Virus record (IMG/VR): IMGVR_UViG_3300045971_000577
Span: 62,001-126,000 of that record
Length of the DNA stretch: 64,000 nt
Direction: 5' to 3' (one strand)
A program made the position numbers and the translations under genes. The notes beneath the pieces are model-generated. The model worked only from the letters and a program-made list of their open reading frames with translations, was not told the origin of the DNA and searched no databases. Position 1 is the stretch's first letter. Each line of letters opens with the position of its first letter. Below are positions 10,138 to 62,923 of this stretch, one piece after another.

Positions 10138-10620
10138 TTATAGTGTAGTAACAGTCGAATCCGGCAACCACAGGGTTACAGGATAGTCTATGGTTTCTTC
10201 GATGATGGTGCGAATAATATTCCAGTTGCCGCCGCCACGTGCTGCGCCGATCATCGGAATATGTAGTTCTTGCGGACACATGGTGTCAATGGCTGTTTTG
10301 GCGATGAAAGTGTTGATGAATTCGAAGCAAGTTTGAATAGCATCGTAACTAACCATTCGCGTACCCTTACCGTACAGGTGTTGGGTAATCGCATTCCAAA
10401 TGATGAGATTAGGCGCGATAGCAGTAGGAAGGGAGGTGCCGAGCTGCAATCCACCGTTCTCATGGACTGACATGTAGTCTTCATAGGCGGTAGGATAGGT
10501 TGCCTTGATACCAAGTGCAACACCAGAACCCATCACACCTTGTGCGTTACAGCCGTGGACGACATGGCCTTGCTTGATGTGAAGCAAGTTGCCAAACTGC
10601 GTCATTACCTTTGTGCTCAT
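10138..10620 (-). CDS. macro domain (ADP-ribose processing) protein
   Basis: GNLL, VHGCNAQGVMGSGVA, PMIGAARGGG.W motifs. Confidence 0.9.
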   Translation of the reverse strand: MSTKVMTQFGNLLHIKQGHVVHGCNAQGVMGSGVALGIKATYPTAYEDYMSVHENGGLQLGTSLPTAIAPNLIIWNAITQHLYGKGTRMVSYDAIQTCFEFINTFIAKTAIDTMCPQELHIPMIGAARGGGNWNIIRTIIEETIDYPVTLWLPDSTVTTL

Positions 10621-10763
10621 TTGAAATAGTCCCAAACAAAGTAACCAGCCAGGGCAACAAATGCCAGGCTAAGGAGACCACCGCCAGTCAGCAGGCCCCA
10701 CACGTTGACTGCCAGGATGGCAATCAGCACCCATCCCCAGGTATCAGGTTTCCGTAGATTCAT
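10617..10763 (-). CDS. 48-aa membrane protein (below ORF-track cutoff)
   Basis: Hand-translated MNLRKPDTWGWVLIAILAVNVWGLLTGGGLLSLAFVALAGYFVWDYFK; fills the gap, ATGA overlap with macro gene. Confidence 0.7.
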   Translation of the reverse strand: MNLRKPDTWGWVLIAILAVNVWGLLTGGGLLSLAFVALAGYFVWDYFK

Positions 10764-10764
10764 T

Positions 10765-10947
10765 TTATATTGCCTCGATAATTTGATTTACAACAACAAT
10801 GGCAGGATTATAATCTGCCGGACTAATGTCGAATAGAATAATCGAACTATCCGGTCCATAGAAACCAACAACTGTGGCTATCTGGCCATCAAGCTCAGAA
10901 TCGCCAGACCCAATAATCTTTACTCTATCCTGTATTTCTGGTCGCAT
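10765..10947 (-). CDS. small SH3/KOW-like hypothetical protein
   Basis: 60 aa, AGGA SD, DRVKI...GQIATVV pattern. Confidence 0.6.
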   Translation of the reverse strand: MRPEIQDRVKIIGSGDSELDGQIATVVGFYGPDSSIILFDISPADYNPAIVVVNQIIEAI

Positions 10948-10956
10948 CTTGTTTCC

Positions 10957-11202
10957 TTATCTAAGATCGTCTTCAGTGTATAAACAGGTACATGACGAGC
11001 AATACCCATTCTTAGTAAATTCACCGTGTTGTGCTTTGTGGCGTGAAAGTCTGTAATCCGGATCGACAGGATTTCGGTCCATTCTTCTGGTCATTGCACT
11101 GACAGACACATTGTACAGTTCGGCACATTCCTTAAGGGTTTTGCCGTCAGTATATCGCAACCTGAAAAGATCAGATAGCTCGCTGTGGGTCCATTGTTTC
11201 AC
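10957..11202 (-). CDS. small HTH protein
   Basis: GKTLKECAELYNVSVSAMTRR helix-turn-helix pattern. Confidence 0.65.
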   Translation of the reverse strand: MKQWTHSELSDLFRLRYTDGKTLKECAELYNVSVSAMTRRMDRNPVDPDYRLSRHKAQHGEFTKNGYCSSCTCLYTEDDLR

Positions 11203-19799: not shown

Positions 19800-19919
19800 A
19801 CTACATTGTAGCATGGAGAATGTTAGCTGTCAAGCTGACTACAGATCTCGAGAAGATAAATAGTGTAGTTCGCGGGATTGCCGTCCCCAACCACTCTACT
19901 GCCCATAGGAGCACCAGCG

Positions 19920-20579
19920 ATGTATTTAGCATACACCTACCTTATTCGAAATAAAATAACTAATCAGTTTTATTACGGATCTCGATTTCATCACATCAGT
20001 AAACACCGTATTCCCGAAGATGACCTCTGGAAACATTATTTCACCACATCAAAGTATATCAGGGATGATATAAAAATATACGGTAAAGATTCATTTCATT
20101 ACGAAATAATAATGAAAAATATGGATTATGATATTTGCTATTGGTATGAACAGCAACTTATAAAGGAAAATATAGGTAATCCACTATGCATGAACAAGCA
20201 TTATACTGATAAAGATTCGGGGCATAGAAAGTTTTCAGTTGCCGGCACTACTCACAGTGAGGAGAGTAAGAGAAAAATGTCTATTGCTAAAGAGGGAAAA
20301 TCTCTACCGCGCAAGCCTGGTGTTACAGAAAAAATTGTACAGACCAGAAAGAAAAATAATGTCAGACCCAGCGAAGAAGCAAAGAAAAAGCAATCTGCTT
20401 CTATGACTGGCAAGACACCGTGGAACAAAGGTAAAATTGCCACAGACGAAGCTAAGAAAAATCAGTCGACATCACATAAAAACATACCATGGTCGCAGGC
20501 CAGGCGTGATGCACAGAATAAAAAAAGACTACTCGAATTGAGAACAATTTTCCAGAAAGTTCTCAACCCCACCAGATAA
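19920..20579 (+). mobile_element. GIY-YIG (Seg-like) homing endonuclease with NUMOD3 repeats
   Basis: AYTYLIRNKITNQFYYGSR; HSEESKRKMS, SEEAKKKQS, PWNKG; GATAAATA at 19855; AGGAG SD supports ATG 19920. Confidence 0.85.
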
Positions 20580-37245: not shown

Positions 37246-40197
37246 TCAAAGTGCGCTGAAGTCAAACAAGGTTTCCAGGTGTGCATGTTCCTTGTTTGTG
37301 CGGGATAGATCCCAATTCAAACAACCAACAAGATTTTTTACCTTTTGGTCAACAATACCTGCCATCATGTCTTCGCTGTCAAATGGTAGATCTAGGAACC
37401 ATTGTGGCAAGTGAACTTCGTCTACAGGATACGCAATACTAGAAAGCCTGTTCTCTGGGGTTTCACGTAGCTTGCAAACAATAATCTTCTGTCCGTCAAT
37501 AATACGCATGGAGTGTTGATCCATGTGCATATCCTTCATCCTATTCCATGCAAGACTTGCTGTTACGTGTCCGGGTACATGTAGATTGCCTACTTCTTCG
37601 CCCTTCATTTTCATATGCATTGCGGCATCAACTTTATCACGATAATGCGACAGTTTATTCACAGCTCTCGGTGTGCCTTGTTGCCACGGTTTCATATCCT
37701 CAAACTTTTCCTTGAACTTTCTGATTTTTTCAATAATAAAGTTTTCGCCCTTATCGGTAAGTGTGTCCAATAGAATCTCAGATAGAAACTGTTGTACAAA
37801 CTTAGGAGTATCTGCACGCTTCAAGTCCAGGCCCATTGCCTTCACCTTGCCAGGCTTGCCACCGACGTCAAGCCTGATTCCGTCCTTGTCAAACATCAGA
37901 CAAGCGTAACGCTTCTTTACAATCCAAAGGCCGCTTTCGGAAATAGTTTCTCTTGAGCTCGCAATAACTCCAGTTGACCGTTTAATGGGCACGTTGAGTT
38001 TGGTATGTAAAAAATCCGGGAACGTTGCCGAGACCGCCCCGGCAAGTCCATTATACGTATCAATGATGGACTCCTTTGTCCACTCGACCTCACCAGAATC
38101 AATCTCCCTTCTAAGAACTGGATATGCTGAAAAGTAGCACGAGTCAGTATCTCCGTAGACAATTGCGTCACCATAATGGTCATAGTTCCCTGTAATCATT
38201 TCGTTTGTTTTAGCCGCCATATGCTTGGTAATGGTTCTACCAGTCAATGTTGTAGATTGTCCGAGACGCTGATCGAAGAAGCGGCTTCCTGCGTTCAGCA
38301 AGGCGCCGTAAGCAGAGTTCAAGTTGATCTTCTTTACTAGCTGTCTCTTATCCCAAAATCCGATAACGCGGCGCAGGACCTTCTGATCCCGACTGATTGC
38401 CTTACCGTCCTTTACCATAAGATTGTGTTGATTCATGTATTGAACTACACGCTTTTTATGCCCTTCTTCCAGTAGTTCTTTCAACTTTTTTGGTCTATAT
38501 GCTTCGGACTCTAGGTAGGGATTAGCCTTAGTCTCTACATCGCTGATATCGTCATTTATGAACAAATCTTGAGTTATTTTGACACCTTCGATCTTTGGAT
38601 TATCTTCAATATCAGTATAGTTAGTCATGATACCTTGAAGAGTCTTGCGCTCACTATACCAACGTGTCAACAGACCCGGAATTACACCGTCAATGTCAGT
38701 TCTGAAAATAGTACCGTTAGAACTAATACACCACGGCTGCCCGGATTGAAAAATCAGGTCACTAAGTTCTTTACCTGTGACCTCGAACTCCTGACCGTCT
38801 TCCATATCTAGTATTAGCTTAGTCCCGATATCCTTATCGTAAAACTCTTCCATTTCTAGTACATTGAATCTATCGTTCCACCAAGATGCGAATGTATATT
38901 TCGCGCCCTTGCGTTCCCAGTCTGCAATAGCCTGATTTGTGCGATCAAGTCTAATCTGTCCAACAATAGTTTCTGGACTCATATTTAGCGTTCTAATAAC
39001 TGATGGATACAGCGACTTCATGTCAGTTGATGCAATCCACTTATGTAGCCCACGCTTCGGTGTAGCAACCCAACCGCCTGCCGCACGATTTGCTTCGCTT
39101 TCTTTGCCGTGCTTCTTATCAGGGCAAACCATATTACGGTTGTGAGCTTCCATAAGAACATTCTGGTCTGTAACTGCAACCGCGCCCATTGTAGTCTGAA
39201 TAAGAACACAGCTCGAATGGGCAATGGAACTTGCCAAATCAACGAACTGTAATTTTTTATCGAGTTTATCGAGAAGTCGGGTATCTTGGATGTTATACTC
39301 TAAGAACTTCTTAAAGTCGTCGTTATACAACTCATCCAATGTACCTTCGTACTCAACCTTTGTATCGCCTAGTTCAATTTCTGCAATTGAGTTTAGCTTG
39401 TAGCTGTGGCGCTCTTCATAGTTGTACTTCTTGTACAATTCAAGGTAGTCAACGTGTACACGACCGATAAGGTCATACGTAGGTTCTACCTTGCCGCCGC
39501 GTTCGATTTCACGAACCTTAGGTTGTTGTTCCCATAGGCATAATCTGCGTGCTTCTTGCTTACCAAGAATACGCTTGATTCTATTTACTACATACGGAAT
39601 ATCGTAAAATGAACTGTTCCAGCCGCTTAGTACATCTGCGTCTTCAATAACGTCCATAAATGCATTCAACATATCCCCTTCTTTTTCGAAGAGAACCACA
39701 TTACCGACTTGGTCTGCTATTTCTTGTGCTTCATCCCACGTAAGTGTCTCCGGTGGTATTGCTAGACAGATAATTTCATCTAACCATTGTAGATGTACAG
39801 AGATAGATGTAATAGAGTTCTTTGCATCTGCAGGATCCGACCAGCCAAAGTCTTTATCAAAGCTGGTTTCAATGTCGAAAAATGCTACATGAAGTGCAGG
39901 TGCGTCAATGTGCTGATAGTTGTGCTCGAGACAACGGAAAACAGGATCCACATCCGTTTCCCACTTCTTCACATTGTGAGAAAGTGTCTTAACAAGCTTT
40001 TGTTTTTCAGCGTATGTGCGTGGAACAACCTTCTTTACTGTATCGCCGTAGATAGACTTATTAGTCCCTCTCGGATCGTTTATAAAAAAGTGATAGTCAG
40101 GTGCGTATTCCTTGTAAACTCTCTTACCGTTTACTCTTTCAACAATCCTGATTAGTTCTGATTCGCCGCTCTTCTTGAAAAATGCGTCAACGTAGAT
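37246..40197 (-). CDS. family B DNA polymerase (983 aa, probable ATC start)
   Basis: Exo FDIET, GWNS..YDIPY, YNIQD; pol DMKSLYPS, KINLNSAYG, YGDTDS, KKRY; frame continues 75 codons upstream of the track GTG to ATC TAC GTT GAC GCA after AAGGGG. Confidence 0.95.
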   Translation of the reverse strand: MYVDAFFKKSGESELIRIVERVNGKRVYKEYAPDYHFFINDPRGTNKSIYGDTVKKVVPRTYAEKQKLVKTLSHNVKKWETDVDPVFRCLEHNYQHIDAPALHVAFFDIETSFDKDFGWSDPADAKNSITSISVHLQWLDEIICLAIPPETLTWDEAQEIADQVGNVVLFEKEGDMLNAFMDVIEDADVLSGWNSSFYDIPYVVNRIKRILGKQEARRLCLWEQQPKVREIERGGKVEPTYDLIGRVHVDYLELYKKYNYEERHSYKLNSIAEIELGDTKVEYEGTLDELYNDDFKKFLEYNIQDTRLLDKLDKKLQFVDLASSIAHSSCVLIQTTMGAVAVTDQNVLMEAHNRNMVCPDKKHGKESEANRAAGGWVATPKRGLHKWIASTDMKSLYPSVIRTLNMSPETIVGQIRLDRTNQAIADWERKGAKYTFASWWNDRFNVLEMEEFYDKDIGTKLILDMEDGQEFEVTGKELSDLIFQSGQPWCISSNGTIFRTDIDGVIPGLLTRWYSERKTLQGIMTNYTDIEDNPKIEGVKITQDLFINDDISDVETKANPYLESEAYRPKKLKELLEEGHKKRVVQYMNQHNLMVKDGKAISRDQKVLRRVIGFWDKRQLVKKINLNSAYGALLNAGSRFFDQRLGQSTTLTGRTITKHMAAKTNEMITGNYDHYGDAIVYGDTDSCYFSAYPVLRREIDSGEVEWTKESIIDTYNGLAGAVSATFPDFLHTKLNVPIKRSTGVIASSRETISESGLWIVKKRYACLMFDKDGIRLDVGGKPGKVKAMGLDLKRADTPKFVQQFLSEILLDTLTDKGENFIIEKIRKFKEKFEDMKPWQQGTPRAVNKLSHYRDKVDAAMHMKMKGEEVGNLHVPGHVTASLAWNRMKDMHMDQHSMRIIDGQKIIVCKLRETPENRLSSIAYPVDEVHLPQWFLDLPFDSEDMMAGIVDQKVKNLVGCLNWDLSRTNKEHAHLETLFDFSAL

Positions 40198-40208
40198 AGC
40201 AGTTCCCC

Positions 40209-60728: not shown

Positions 60729-60751
60729 AAAAGGGCCTATAGGCCCTTTTT
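60728..60751. terminator. bidirectional terminator
   Basis: AAAAAGGGCC-TATA-GGCCCTTTTT between convergent genes. Confidence 0.85.
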
Positions 60752-60960
60752 CAATTGCGAGATTTTAGCTCTTTTTCAAGAACTTTAATTTTGTCATTTA
60801 GTTCTTGAAATTGCAAATCATATGCAATGTGACTGTCTACCATATGAGATGTATGCACATATCTTGCATCAGTAAACAAAAATCCACTTACAGTAAAAAT
60901 AAGAGTACCTGATGACCCTGCAAATACTTTCCATGGATTATTCTTGATAGTTTCCCACAT
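60751..60960 (-). CDS. small membrane-anchored coiled-coil protein (paralogue of next gene)
   Basis: KNN.WK...GSSGT.I.....LFT.DARY.H. Confidence 0.7.
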   Translation of the reverse strand: MWETIKNNPWKVFAGSSGTLIFTVSGFLFTDARYVHTSHMVDSHIAYDLQFQELNDKIKVLEKELKSRN

Positions 60961-60964
60961 ATTA

Positions 60965-61291
60965 CTATTCCTTCTTTTTGGGTGTCGCTTCTTCTAACTG
61001 TCGTTGATAGCGATCACGCAAGGCCTGATCTATAGGCGAAAGTTTCTGGTCACGTGATTGAGATCGTTTTATGTCGAGTTCAAACAATTTATCCTCGAGC
61101 ATCTGTCTACGCAATGTCTGCGTAGTTTCATGAATGATTCTATGAGTCTGTACTTTATCCTGAGCTACATCAGCAGCATGGGCATAACGAGCATCAACTG
61201 TGAATAATGCACCAATGAGAGTGATGATCGTACCTGATGATCCTAATGTGATCTTCCAGGTGTTGTTCTTGAGTATCTCAGCAATGTTCAT
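60965..61291 (-). CDS. membrane-anchored coiled-coil protein
   Basis: KNNTWKITLGSSGTIITLIGALFTVDARYAH; CATAAATA at 61316-61323. Confidence 0.75.
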   Translation of the reverse strand: MNIAEILKNNTWKITLGSSGTIITLIGALFTVDARYAHAADVAQDKVQTHRIIHETTQTLRRQMLEDKLFELDIKRSQSRDQKLSPIDQALRDRYQRQLEEATPKKKE

Positions 61292-61359
61292 GAATATCCC
61301 TATATGCTACATAGGTATTTATGATAATTCTTATTCTTTTGTGCGATACTGCACAGAAC

Positions 61360-61832
61360 AATGATGTATTAGATGTTTGACGGTGGAGACCATAGAAAGG
61401 GTATCGTCAAAACACCCAAATAAAAATTTGGAATTTCAACTCACCTTTTGACAGCATCGCCATAGACTGAAAAATAACTTTACGCAGTGTCGGATTGATT
61501 ATTTCTAACTGCAACCTAGTGGAAGTCATTGATGGGCTCTTTTGAGTCACTGCATTTGTTACTCGCATTTCAGTCGCTTGTAACGCAGTCCGTCGGCCAT
61601 ACCTTTCTTTCACATACCGACAGCGAACTTATTTTTATCTGATGCTAATTTCTACGGTTCCCGTATACTTTGGTGATCAGCATTATGTATGCTGATAACA
61701 TCATGCCCTAATCGTGGAAGCCCACGGGATAACCGTCCATTTCTGTCGGCTTGAGTATTGACCGCTATTAGGCAGTTTGTCTCAGTGCAATATTAACTCG
61801 GCGCACCAACCTTCAGCTTCATAATGACAATC
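61360..61832 (-). ncRNA. putative large structured non-coding RNA (unassigned family)
   Basis: Largest gene-free gap in the window; at least 10 nested helices, a long-range closing helix and an 8-bp pseudoknot found by eye; strand inferred from G-U pairs and the upstream gene. Confidence 0.55.
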
Positions 61833-62321
61833 TTAGAGTGCTTTCTTCTGTGCTCTTCTTTCCCTTCGTTGTTCATTACGAAGTTTGAATTCAGCATTAG
61901 TTCTACCTAAACGCTCGACAGTTGTCGGCACTCTTATTTTCTTCTTTTTCTTCTTATTTTTTGCCAAATAAGGATTTCCAGTGGCTTTATCGTATCTAAC
62001 ACGGTGATTTAGAAAAAATCGTAAATCTCTCGATGGATCAAGATACACCACTGTGGTTTTCCAGTGCTGATTTATCAACAATGGATTATTACGAGATTCG
62101 TAGATTAGTGTTTGTTCAATCTCGAATGCAGTCTTTGGGTTATTAAATTCGGCAAGGATCCTGTATGTGTAATCGGCGAAATTTTTACTAACTTCTTCCG
62201 AGCTAGTAAAATAGTGTGTACCGAAATCTAAATTAGCAGGAAAGTAATTAGCTTCTCTATAACCTATATAGAATTTCTTCGTTACTTTGTGCTCACACCG
62301 ATACACATAAGCTCTTGTCAT
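61833..62321 (-). CDS. GIY-YIG-like nuclease with Lys/Arg-rich tail
   Basis: AYVY...HKVTKKFYIGYR, YFTSS, E.EQ.LI, NPLLIN; tail KNKKKKKKIR...RRERRAQKK; no NUMOD3. Confidence 0.75.
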   Translation of the reverse strand: MTRAYVYRCEHKVTKKFYIGYREANYFPANLDFGTHYFTSSEEVSKNFADYTYRILAEFNNPKTAFEIEQTLIYESRNNPLLINQHWKTTVVYLDPSRDLRFFLNHRVRYDKATGNPYLAKNKKKKKKIRVPTTVERLGRTNAEFKLRNEQRRERRAQKKAL

Positions 62322-62335
62322 ATTACCTGTTTTTA

Positions 62336-62923
62336 TTATCCGTTAAGGACCCAACCGAAGATTTCTTTCCACGGTTGCTCAACACTTACTTTCGGGAATA
62401 GATCCGTTTCGTAATGTGTGTTGTATGGGTGATTGATAAGAATAGGCCGTAGACCTGCTTCATATCCTGCCTCTGCTTGACGCATGTGATCCTCAATCCA
62501 GAAATAATTTGTATCAGCCCAACGCAGTAGTTCATGCGCCTTGCTAATGCCCGTTTCTAGACAGACAATCTCGTTAAAAATATCCCCGAAGATTGCCTTC
62601 AGGTTTTTAGTCCGATTGATCTTAGCATCCGGATGACTACTGATACTTGTAACAATAGTAAATCTGAATCCTAAATCAACAATCTTCTGAACATATTCCA
62701 CAGAGTCTGCAAAAGGTTCCAAATCTGCCACTAGCGGACCTTCATTGAATTCTTTTACAAACTGGTGTGCAAGTGTTGACGGAATATTATGTCGGGTATG
62801 AATAGTATAATCACTATCTGTACCAGGAATACGCGGGAAGCCTTTGCTATCCATGAACTTTTCGAAACCTTTGTTCCAGTTTAACAGACAACCGTCTGCA
62901 TCTGATAGGATTACTTTGTTCAT
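62336..62923 (-). CDS. HAD-family phosphatase (5'-nucleotidase-like)
   Basis: ILSDADGCL, VTS, K, WIED, HPYN. Confidence 0.85.
   Translation of the reverse strand: MNKVILSDADGCLLNWNKGFEKFMDSKGFPRIPGTDSDYTIHTRHNIPSTLAHQFVKEFNEGPLVADLEPFADSVEYVQKIVDLGFRFTIVTSISSHPDAKINRTKNLKAIFGDIFNEIVCLETGISKAHELLRWADTNYFWIEDHMRQAEAGYEAGLRPILINHPYNTHYETDLFPKVSVEQPWKEIFGWVLNG

Follow-up and report, generated by a model that had tools for sequence, protein, structure and literature searches.

A 541-nucleotide (nt) gap in a viral contig carries a real, previously uncatalogued gene for a structured RNA of about 450 nt. The gap (61292–61832) lies in a stretch of 64,000 nt, here called the window, that spans positions 62,001 to 126,000 of the 369-kb contig IMGVR_UViG_3300045971_000577; unless a locus is named, all coordinates are those of the window. 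Directly upstream of the RNA, and on the same strand, an open reading frame (ORF) of 162 amino acids (aa) encodes a GIY-YIG protein. The initial annotation, made from this DNA alone, had proposed that the two may be functionally coupled, as a ribonucleoprotein (RNP), an RNA-guided nuclease or an origin with its nicking enzyme. Covariation in homologues confirmed that a non-coding RNA with a pseudoknotted structure is encoded on the minus strand of the gap; the coupling to the nuclease fails when linkage is followed across related phages, as half of the long-form lineages described below lack the nuclease. We consider it likely that a stand-alone structured RNA and a separate GIY-YIG homing endonuclease lie side by side here as two independent things.

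A structured non-coding RNA family

The gap begins at the stop codon of the GIY-YIG ORF. With two small spurious ORFs set aside, it is the longest ORF-poor stretch of the window (541 nt, with 350 nt for the next one), as the initial annotation had stated. Over 452 nt it is 86.7% identical in nucleotide sequence to four other contigs (L001–L004; homologous loci are numbered in this way throughout), while the flanking proteins share 73% (nuclease) and 54% (the 108-aa protein encoded downstream) aa identity with the same contigs. L007, L009 and L010 contain weaker matches to the RNA, located 5′ of the 108-aa gene. A missed protein gene or recoded ORF in the gap was considered and rejected. A 68-aa ORF (61407..61613) is interrupted, by a stop or a frameshift, in each of nine homologues checked, and the substitutions between the window and L001 are spread 6/7/2 over the three codon positions, with no third-position bias, so that this ORF is not coding.

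We assessed the RNA structure in several alignments. RNAalifold predicted 52 pairs from 29 sequences, 40 of them with compensatory changes. In an alignment of 42 sequences (A3), 17 helices with 83 pairs were 87% paired, compared with 34–46% when partners were slid, and both sides had changed in 62 pairs, compared with 29–39 in the slid controls. A structure-free scan recovered P2, P3a, P4, P5, P6, P7/P7a, P9 and P10 together with the pseudoknot. In the alignment to a covariance model (CM), which covers a core of 183 positions, the share of cells that pair is 97.8%, compared with 78.4% in shuffles (0/500) and 27–47% in slid controls, and 31 of 37 pairs have changed on both sides against 22.0 in shuffles (0/500); for the 5′ third and the 3′ domain, support comes from our own pair counts. 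The RNA contains at least 13 covarying helices and one pseudoknot. Covariation and folding energy had both been named as checks on the initial annotation. The compensatory changes bear out the structure, while the folding energy of the single sequence is only marginal (z about −2 against shuffled controls, on either strand); the evidence for RNA structure is thus the covariation and not the folding energy. On the minus strand, 92.3% of cells pair, as opposed to 86.7% on the opposite strand, and 247 cells hold G-U against 60 with A-C. The RNA is therefore read from the minus strand, as the G-U pairs noted in the single sequence had suggested.

The family has two forms, a long one of about 440–480 nt (about 447 nt in the window) and a short one of about 375–400 nt (about 380 nt). 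Eight of the eleven pairings first proposed for the window hold in the homologues (table 1). They comprise P7 (61549–61556/61582–61589), the hairpins at 61713–61726 and 61416–61431, the stem of the three-way domain with both of its inner hairpins, the pseudoknot, and 61590–61596/61616–61623, which had been offered as an alternative and turns out to be the real partner (P6). The other three do not stand: a 14-bp closing helix (61525–61538/61815–61828) is 21–36% paired in homologues, 61616–61623/61743–61750 is 12–49% paired and 61732–61750 forms its own hairpin, and 61406–61412/61446–61452 has zero compensatory changes. The pseudoknot joins the P7a loop (61568–61575, its 5′ strand) to the segment 61465–61472 over 8 bp. 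The unbiased scan likewise linked this loop to the segment just 5′ of the repeat R1 described below, and the variants all pair, so that pairing is kept in three different sequence versions: CUGAA/UUCAG, UUAUAA/UUAUAA (in one subgroup) and CUAUA/UAUAG (in L310).

Further helices differ between the two forms. The topology of the long-form three-way domain was repeated in independent folds of L001, L007 and L009, and a smaller P5/P5a takes its place in the short form. In most short-form copies an inner hairpin, P8a, extends P8. In A3, P12L was identified by eye, with perfect 9–12-bp versions in L007 and L069, and the short form has a single hairpin in place of P12L/P11L. At the three-way junction, P9 shows compensatory changes in 6/6 pairs and P10 is 100% paired with three compensatory changes. 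The L10 loop of P10 (61489–61507) is invariant and, with loop L6 and AUACCCUU, makes up the near-invariant elements of the RNA. AAGG (61810–61813) is complementary to CCUU within 61376–61404 and would form a candidate closing helix, P1, in which changes are one-sided only. By eye, two elements recur in the same sense: GGUAUGUG in L6 and in the 5′ strand of long-form P12L, and AAGG, present at the 5′ end and again ahead of the 3′ hairpin.

The RNA also contains an imperfect direct repeat, R1 and R2. Across homologues, both the 5′ part of the repeat and its 3′ 8-nt core change in parallel and not complementarily; GUCA, for example, becomes GGUG, GGCA, CCCA or GUCG simultaneously in both copies. 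Within a sequence, 6.59 of 8 core positions are the same in both copies, compared with 5.17 (s.d. 0.13) when partners are shuffled (0/2000). The likeness reaches 2–4 nt past GUCA, and in the short form the core-to-core spacing is fixed at 51–52 nt. These cores are the only freely varying unpaired segments of the RNA. No complementary strand covarying with R1/R2 was found inside the RNA, nor was a complementary 8-mer found at a consistent place within about 5 kb. A hairpin inside each repeat was rejected, as by eye it breaks in variant sequences. In L060, downstream of position 11046 (the L077 RNA), a 15-nt unit, CTCCGTCATCATACT, is duplicated in tandem exactly at R2; this is the short-form RNA of the window's own phage lineage.

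No known RNA family matches. Rfam 15, whose 4227 models include GOLLD, ROOL, HEARO, RNase P, tmRNA, group I and II introns and ribozymes, gave 0 matches at the gathering threshold in the whole window and 0 in eight homologous loci, and at E ≤ 10 the gap had only chance-level matches to sR16 (E 0.74) and IsrM (E 8.8), with none on a short-form copy. A cluster of tRNA or tmRNA genes was discarded, as ARAGORN found 0 genes in the window and 0 in 11 related loci. Mimicry of rRNA, with GAUACCCU... resembling the 16S 790 loop and GAGCGCAAC the 1100 region, was also discarded, being no better than in dinucleotide shuffles: the best local alignments to E. coli rrsB and rrlB were equalled by 16–60 of 100 shuffles. 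Our search of the literature found no description of the RNA, and the IMG/VR candidate set, whose members average 67 nt, could at most hold fragments of it (PMC10690425).

To collect homologues, we searched with a 17-nt invariant block of the alignment (the L10 core) and let nhmmer decide which matches were true. The block retrieved 56 viral stretches, about 50 of them true homologues, with 32 distinct sequences. Metagenome contigs added at least 29 true homologues with the block among the matches listed, and cellular genome contigs none among the matches listed. Among GenBank phages, blastn with near and distant settings found no match to the long or the short form, and tblastn with the nuclease, the 108-aa protein and a short-form neighbour, c0, found no relatives; c0 itself gave no family or atlas lead to a function. 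The CM of the core found 54 copies, 50 of them distinct, with one copy in the window (61466–61630, 144 bits, E 2.7e-35).

The two forms occupy different places. On the minus strand of the window the order is a HAD/NT5C-like gene, the 162-aa ORF, the gap with the RNA, the 108-aa protein and a 69-aa paralogue of it, beyond which lies a convergent PhoH gene; the HAD-like gene and PhoH generally enclose the long form. The short form follows a GH108/PG_binding_3 endolysin-like gene and faces a 191-aa gene and a T4-baseplate-like gene. Its neighbouring downstream genes converge on the RNA, leaving no co-directional downstream gene. The window's own contig has such a short-form copy outside the window (L077:5579–5938, minus strand, at about 318.9–319.3 kb), about 196 kb away, and the 385-kb contig 3300009709_000001 has one long and one short copy (L056 and L027). 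Since their neighbourhoods differ, the long and short copies are paralogues and not an assembly duplication. In the jumbo phages PA5oct and Atu_ph07, only 82 or about 100 nt separate the HAD gene from PhoH, which directly follows it, and neither the RNA nor the 108-aa gene was found at these syntenic loci. The RNA is therefore an insertion that is specific to an uncultured clade and that usually includes the 108-aa gene as well. As far as we searched, the family is confined to this clade of uncultured jumbo phages, distant kin of PA5oct and Atu_ph07.

The flanks of the short form have features of their own. Between 40 and 70 nt 3′ of the RNA (for example in L066, L067 and L221) there is a conserved intergenic direct repeat, ACGAAGCG...AGTTTACGAAGCG, which adjoins the convergent 191-aa gene at its stop codon; the conserved stretch beyond it is the C-terminal coding region of that gene. 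Between 20 and 90 nt 5′ of the RNA, after the endolysin-like gene, an A-rich spacer carries repeated CCAAATC and AAATCCAA-like motifs, and may be the promoter region of the short-form RNA.

Table 1. Features of the RNA locus, with window coordinates and supporting evidence.
Feature	Coordinates	Strand	Evidence
Long-form member of the structured RNA family, ~447 nt	61376..61822	−	nhmmer match; from the 5′ box GAAGCUG to the end of R2
P2 (61802–61807/61784–61789), 12-nt loop	61784..61807	−	95.8% paired, 4/4 compensatory; in unbiased scan
P3 and P3a (inner stem 61772–61776/61761–61765)	61753..61783	−	P3 99% paired, 3/3 compensatory; P3a 5/5 compensatory (unbiased scan)
P3b hairpin, long form only	61732..61750	−	By eye in A3, stems differ yet complementary; folds of L001 and L009
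P4 hairpin	61706..61728	−	91% paired, 5/6 compensatory; 4/4 in unbiased scan
Long-form three-way domain: stem 61696–61703/61640–61647, hairpins 61676–61696 and 61653–61665	61640..61703	−	5–7 compensatory pairs per helix in long forms
P6 (61617–61623/61590–61596) with near-invariant 20-nt loop L6 (61597–61616)	61590..61623	−	99% paired, 7/7 compensatory
P7 and P7a	61549..61589	−	P7 99.5% paired, 3 compensatory; P7a 91%, 7 compensatory
P8, short hairpin	61537..61546	−	99% paired, 3/3 compensatory
Three-way junction: P9 (61525–61530/61473–61478), P9a (61513–61524), P10 (61508–61512/61484–61488)	61473..61530	−	Covariation
Pseudoknot 3′ strand, partner of loop 61568–61575	61465..61472	−	92% paired in long forms, 74% overall, 6 compensatory
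Direct repeat copy R1	61447..61465	−	Imperfect repeat of R2 (61376–61395), about 20 nt
Long-form 3′ stem-loop: P12L (61434–61445/61400–61412) around P11L hairpin (61416–61431)	61400..61445	−	P11L 4 compensatory
Near-invariant AUACCCUU (61397–61404), then R2 (61376–61395)	61376..61404	−	Alignments; parallel covariation
162-aa GIY-YIG (Seg-like) endonuclease ORF, Lys/Arg-rich C-terminal tail	61833..62321	−	phrog_314 homing endonuclease, 4e-5
HAD/NT5C-like nucleotidase gene	62336..62923	−	Pfam NT5C 2.4e-5; phrog_420; synteny across loci
108-aa protein, hydrophobic N-terminal segment	60965..61291	−	Usual downstream neighbour of long-form RNA in most loci

The GIY-YIG ORF and its linkage to the RNA

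By its motif residues and predicted fold, the 162-aa ORF belongs to the GIY-YIG superfamily, as the initial annotation had proposed for its catalytic domain. A search of 5.8 billion proteins returned nine homologues. Across ten aligned homologues, which include the NUMOD3-bearing endonuclease of the window itself, Y5 and Y7 (Y5-V-Y7), Y18-I-G20, R22, E69 and N84 are invariant. Three of the ten match Pfam GIY-YIG (best 0.0014) and two match SegE_GIY-YIG (2e-6). The AlphaFold2 (AF2) model has a pLDDT of 89 and the order beta-beta-alpha-alpha-beta-alpha over residues 4–75. Foldseek against BFVD gave 39 matches at E ≤ 1e-3; most are to GIY-YIG, Seg-like or homing endonucleases of phages, including SegE-like and group-I-intron endonucleases, and many have a root-mean-square deviation of 2–3 Å over about 90 residues. 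In the model, the C-terminal part has a beta-hairpin and a basic helix as well as a poly-Lys stretch. Five homologues (P0002–P0006; 148–164 aa) have the same basic tail, and three are longer, one of them with NUMOD3; the homologue alignment and the domain search agree with the earlier remark that a Lys/Arg tail stands in place of NUMOD3. The second GIY-YIG endonuclease of the window (19878–20579, plus strand) has 233 aa from a TTG start and NUMOD3-type repeats; it lies on the strand opposite to most window genes and is 26% identical to the 162-aa ORF.

We followed the presence of the nuclease in the spacer between the HAD gene and the RNA. An ORF for it is found in five of ten long-form lineages (the window, L001, L324, L328 and L277), and the other five have no intact copy. 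It is absent from four of these, and L006 retains a 194-nt spacer (L006:4268–4461) with a truncated GIY-YIG N-terminus, SYVYKCTHKITKK, followed by a stop, beside an intact RNA. Where the nuclease is absent, only 22 nt (L007) or 58 nt (L010) separate the HAD stop codon from the RNA, or the spacer holds a small P-loop (APS-kinase-like) ORF instead, as in L009 (3886–4374) and L300 (spacer positions 642–1070). The HAD-RNA spacer thus behaves like a hotspot for insertions. The nuclease is likewise missing from every short-form copy for which the upstream flank was recovered, the second copy of the window's phage among them. By HAD identity, the nearest relatives of the window (L006, L007 and L010; 67–71%) are without an intact nuclease, whereas the most distant (L324; 51%) has one.

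Gain, decay and loss at one fixed site fit a free-standing homing endonuclease, and the 162-aa ORF is, on this comparison of loci, most likely an optional mobile element beside the RNA and not its protein partner. The enzyme would cut nuclease-free alleles near the HAD-RNA junction and spread through their repair, with the highly conserved RNA gene offering a stable place to land; the function of the RNA would not require the enzyme. Seg proteins are free-standing GIY-YIG homing endonucleases of T4-like phages, and SegB sits among the tRNA genes of T4. The 162-aa ORF resembles them in being a small intergenic GIY-YIG enzyme of variable presence at one fixed site, and in that this site adjoins a highly conserved gene, here the RNA gene, that offers a stable target. 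It differs in that a beta-hairpin, poly-Lys stretch and basic helix replace the NUMOD3 or zinc-finger modules, and in a divergence that tracks the flanking gene and suggests long residence; homing is predicted here.

Alternatively, the GIY-YIG protein and the RNA could form one RNP in which the RNA guides, activates or is processed by the nuclease, analogous to IscB or TnpB with their omega RNAs. The RNA begins about 10–20 nt past the nuclease stop codon, the nuclease subfamily has lost NUMOD3 and carries the basic tail, and the short variable cores of R1 and R2 could in principle be guide-like. Seen from the nuclease, all five located tail-bearing relatives (50–73% identical) adjoin the RNA in the order HAD, nuclease, RNA, and a distant NUMOD3-bearing relative lies elsewhere, among radical-SAM genes and with no RNA. 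However, the RNA is fully constrained in the long-form lineages and flank-resolved short-form copies that have no intact nuclease, the decayed remnant of L006 stands beside an intact RNA, an unrelated kinase-like ORF uses the same spacer, and no target complementary to R1/R2 was found within about 5 kb. As in IscB/HEARO and TnpB, a nuclease ORF is followed on the same strand by a conserved structured RNA, but the nuclease is GIY-YIG and not RuvC/HNH, most genomes have the RNA without it, and we found no transposon ends, no guide-target match within about 5 kb and no Rfam HEARO match. The pattern of presence and absence at one fixed intergenic site thus leaves an obligate nuclease-RNA particle unsupported, and we hold an RNP of this kind to be highly improbable. 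A looser version, in which the tail-bearing subfamily needs the RNA to recognise its target or to become active, for example by way of R1/R2, and the RNA serves another, ancestral role in nuclease-free genomes, also seems very remote to us.

A group I intron, as in T4 td with I-TevI, would similarly place a GIY-YIG endonuclease beside a structured RNA of a few hundred nt in a large phage. Here, in contrast, no host gene is interrupted and the RNA lies between a stop codon and the start of a separate gene. The ORF is outside the RNA, the nuclease-free spacer is 22–58 nt long, and Intron_gpI gave no match at E ≤ 10. With complete genes on both sides and no flanking exons, a group I intron was rejected.

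Several observations weigh against our interpretation of an RNA with an independent homing endonuclease beside it. The divergence of the nuclease is about equal to that of the flanking HAD protein (50–73% against 51–63% identity), which looks more like long residence than recent homing. The fact that five of five located tail-bearing relatives adjoin the RNA leaves room for a functional tie from the side of the nuclease. The 162-aa ORF itself had no match at E ≤ 0.1 to the Pfam GIY-YIG models (PF01541 and PF19835), nor any match in the Protein Data Bank (PDB) by Foldseek or sequence profile. As for the RNA, its ends are predicted, having been placed from conservation only, and our analysis identified no partner for it.

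Possible roles of the RNA

As a working guess, and with some reserve, we propose that the RNA may be a folded, trans-acting scaffold. Tertiary contacts or binding surfaces would be provided by its invariant loops, and a single sequence-specific partner, which could be a phage protein dimer or a nucleic acid, would dock at the 8-nt cores of R1 and R2 as two equivalent sites. The parallel changes of R1 and R2 could be read in three ways: one co-evolving partner uses both as equivalent sites, both are processing sites, or their identity is kept for copy-choice or recombination. We see a ribozyme and a self-assembling multimer as the main alternatives to a scaffold.

Were the RNA a ribozyme or otherwise self-processing, R1 and R2 could be equivalent cleavage or ligation sites that free or circularise the 50–70-nt segment between them. 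Its size, its pseudoknot and its invariant unpaired loops are typical of large ribozymes, and the parallel covariation of the cores, the likeness past GUCA and the constant core spacing in the short form would all suit paired sites. However, no internal guide covaries with R1/R2, no Rfam ribozyme matches even at E ≤ 10, and complete genes on both sides leave no flanking exons. We consider self-processing unlikely.

GOLLD and ROOL are large ornate non-coding RNAs that are often carried by phages and prophages. The RNA described here shares with them a large, multi-helix, pseudoknotted and phage-borne architecture, a discovery through conservation alone and the lack of a tie to one neighbouring protein. 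It could likewise self-assemble into an RNA-only multimer with no dedicated protein partner, its many conserved loops serving as intermolecular contacts, and a cryo-EM report on GOLLD and ROOL provides a precedent (bioRxiv 10.1101/2024.12.08.627333). Against this, the RNA has no sequence or CM similarity to either class, is smaller than both (380–450 nt), and no self-complementary loop with covariation was identified in it. It also differs in sitting at fixed syntenic positions and not beside tRNA clusters (0 tRNA genes in the window and 11 loci), in that one contig may have two paralogous forms, and in its parallel-covarying direct repeat. We regard multimer formation, too, as an improbable role, and keep the trans-acting scaffold as our tentative choice.

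Finally, the element could work at the DNA level or in cis. R1 and R2 might be iteron-like or recombination-core repeats, as at an origin or excision site, or the whole might be a regulatory leader of the 108-aa gene. Parallel covariation is what would be expected of sites that are kept mutually identical or read by one protein, one lineage has the tandem duplication at R2, and the 108-aa gene usually comes next after the long form, in the same orientation. Dozens of compensatory changes and the asymmetry between G-U and A-C, however, point to a single-stranded RNA fold, short-form copies have no co-directional gene downstream, and no conserved recombinase or initiator gene is found nearby. 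We judge a DNA-level or cis role to be very unlikely.

Genomic setting and significance

The HAD-like gene is the conserved upstream neighbour of the long-form RNA, with homologues in PA5oct and Atu_ph07, and the ClpA-like, HAD-like and PhoH genes are syntenic with those of the two phages at 32–50% protein identity. Downstream, the 108-aa protein has no Pfam or PHROG family match. It and its neighbour (60751–60960 and 60965–61291, minus strand) are adjacent paralogous small proteins with a hydrophobic N-terminal segment and then a charged, possibly coiled-coil tail; both are without a family match and are missing from the syntenic PA5oct and Atu_ph07 loci. At about 57–59 kb of the window, and at L324:4551–5507, there are genes for an eIF-1A/IF1-like small protein, DnaJ and a ClpA-like protein, as in PA5oct. 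Translation- and chaperone-related genes such as these are typical of jumbo phages. After the gap with the RNA, the largest ORF-free stretches of the window are 10524–10873 (350 nt), 163–455 (293 nt) and 39973–40208 (236 nt), none with an Rfam match.

Large, highly structured non-coding RNAs are rare. To our knowledge, nearly every large structured RNA class of solved function is a ribozyme, an RNP scaffold or, as found recently, a self-assembling RNA cage. An RNA of 380–450 nt with at least 13 covarying helices and a pseudoknot that lies outside Rfam offers structural and functional studies of RNA a new and concrete target. Its parallel-covarying internal repeats are an unusual signature that calls for an explanation, be it two sites for one partner, a switch or copy-choice. 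If the tail-bearing nuclease did prove to depend on the RNA, it would be the first RNA-dependent GIY-YIG nuclease. As most likely read here, the locus is a clean example of a homing endonuclease landing beside an RNA gene, and its lesson is that adjacency alone should not be taken as a sign of an RNA-guided nuclease.

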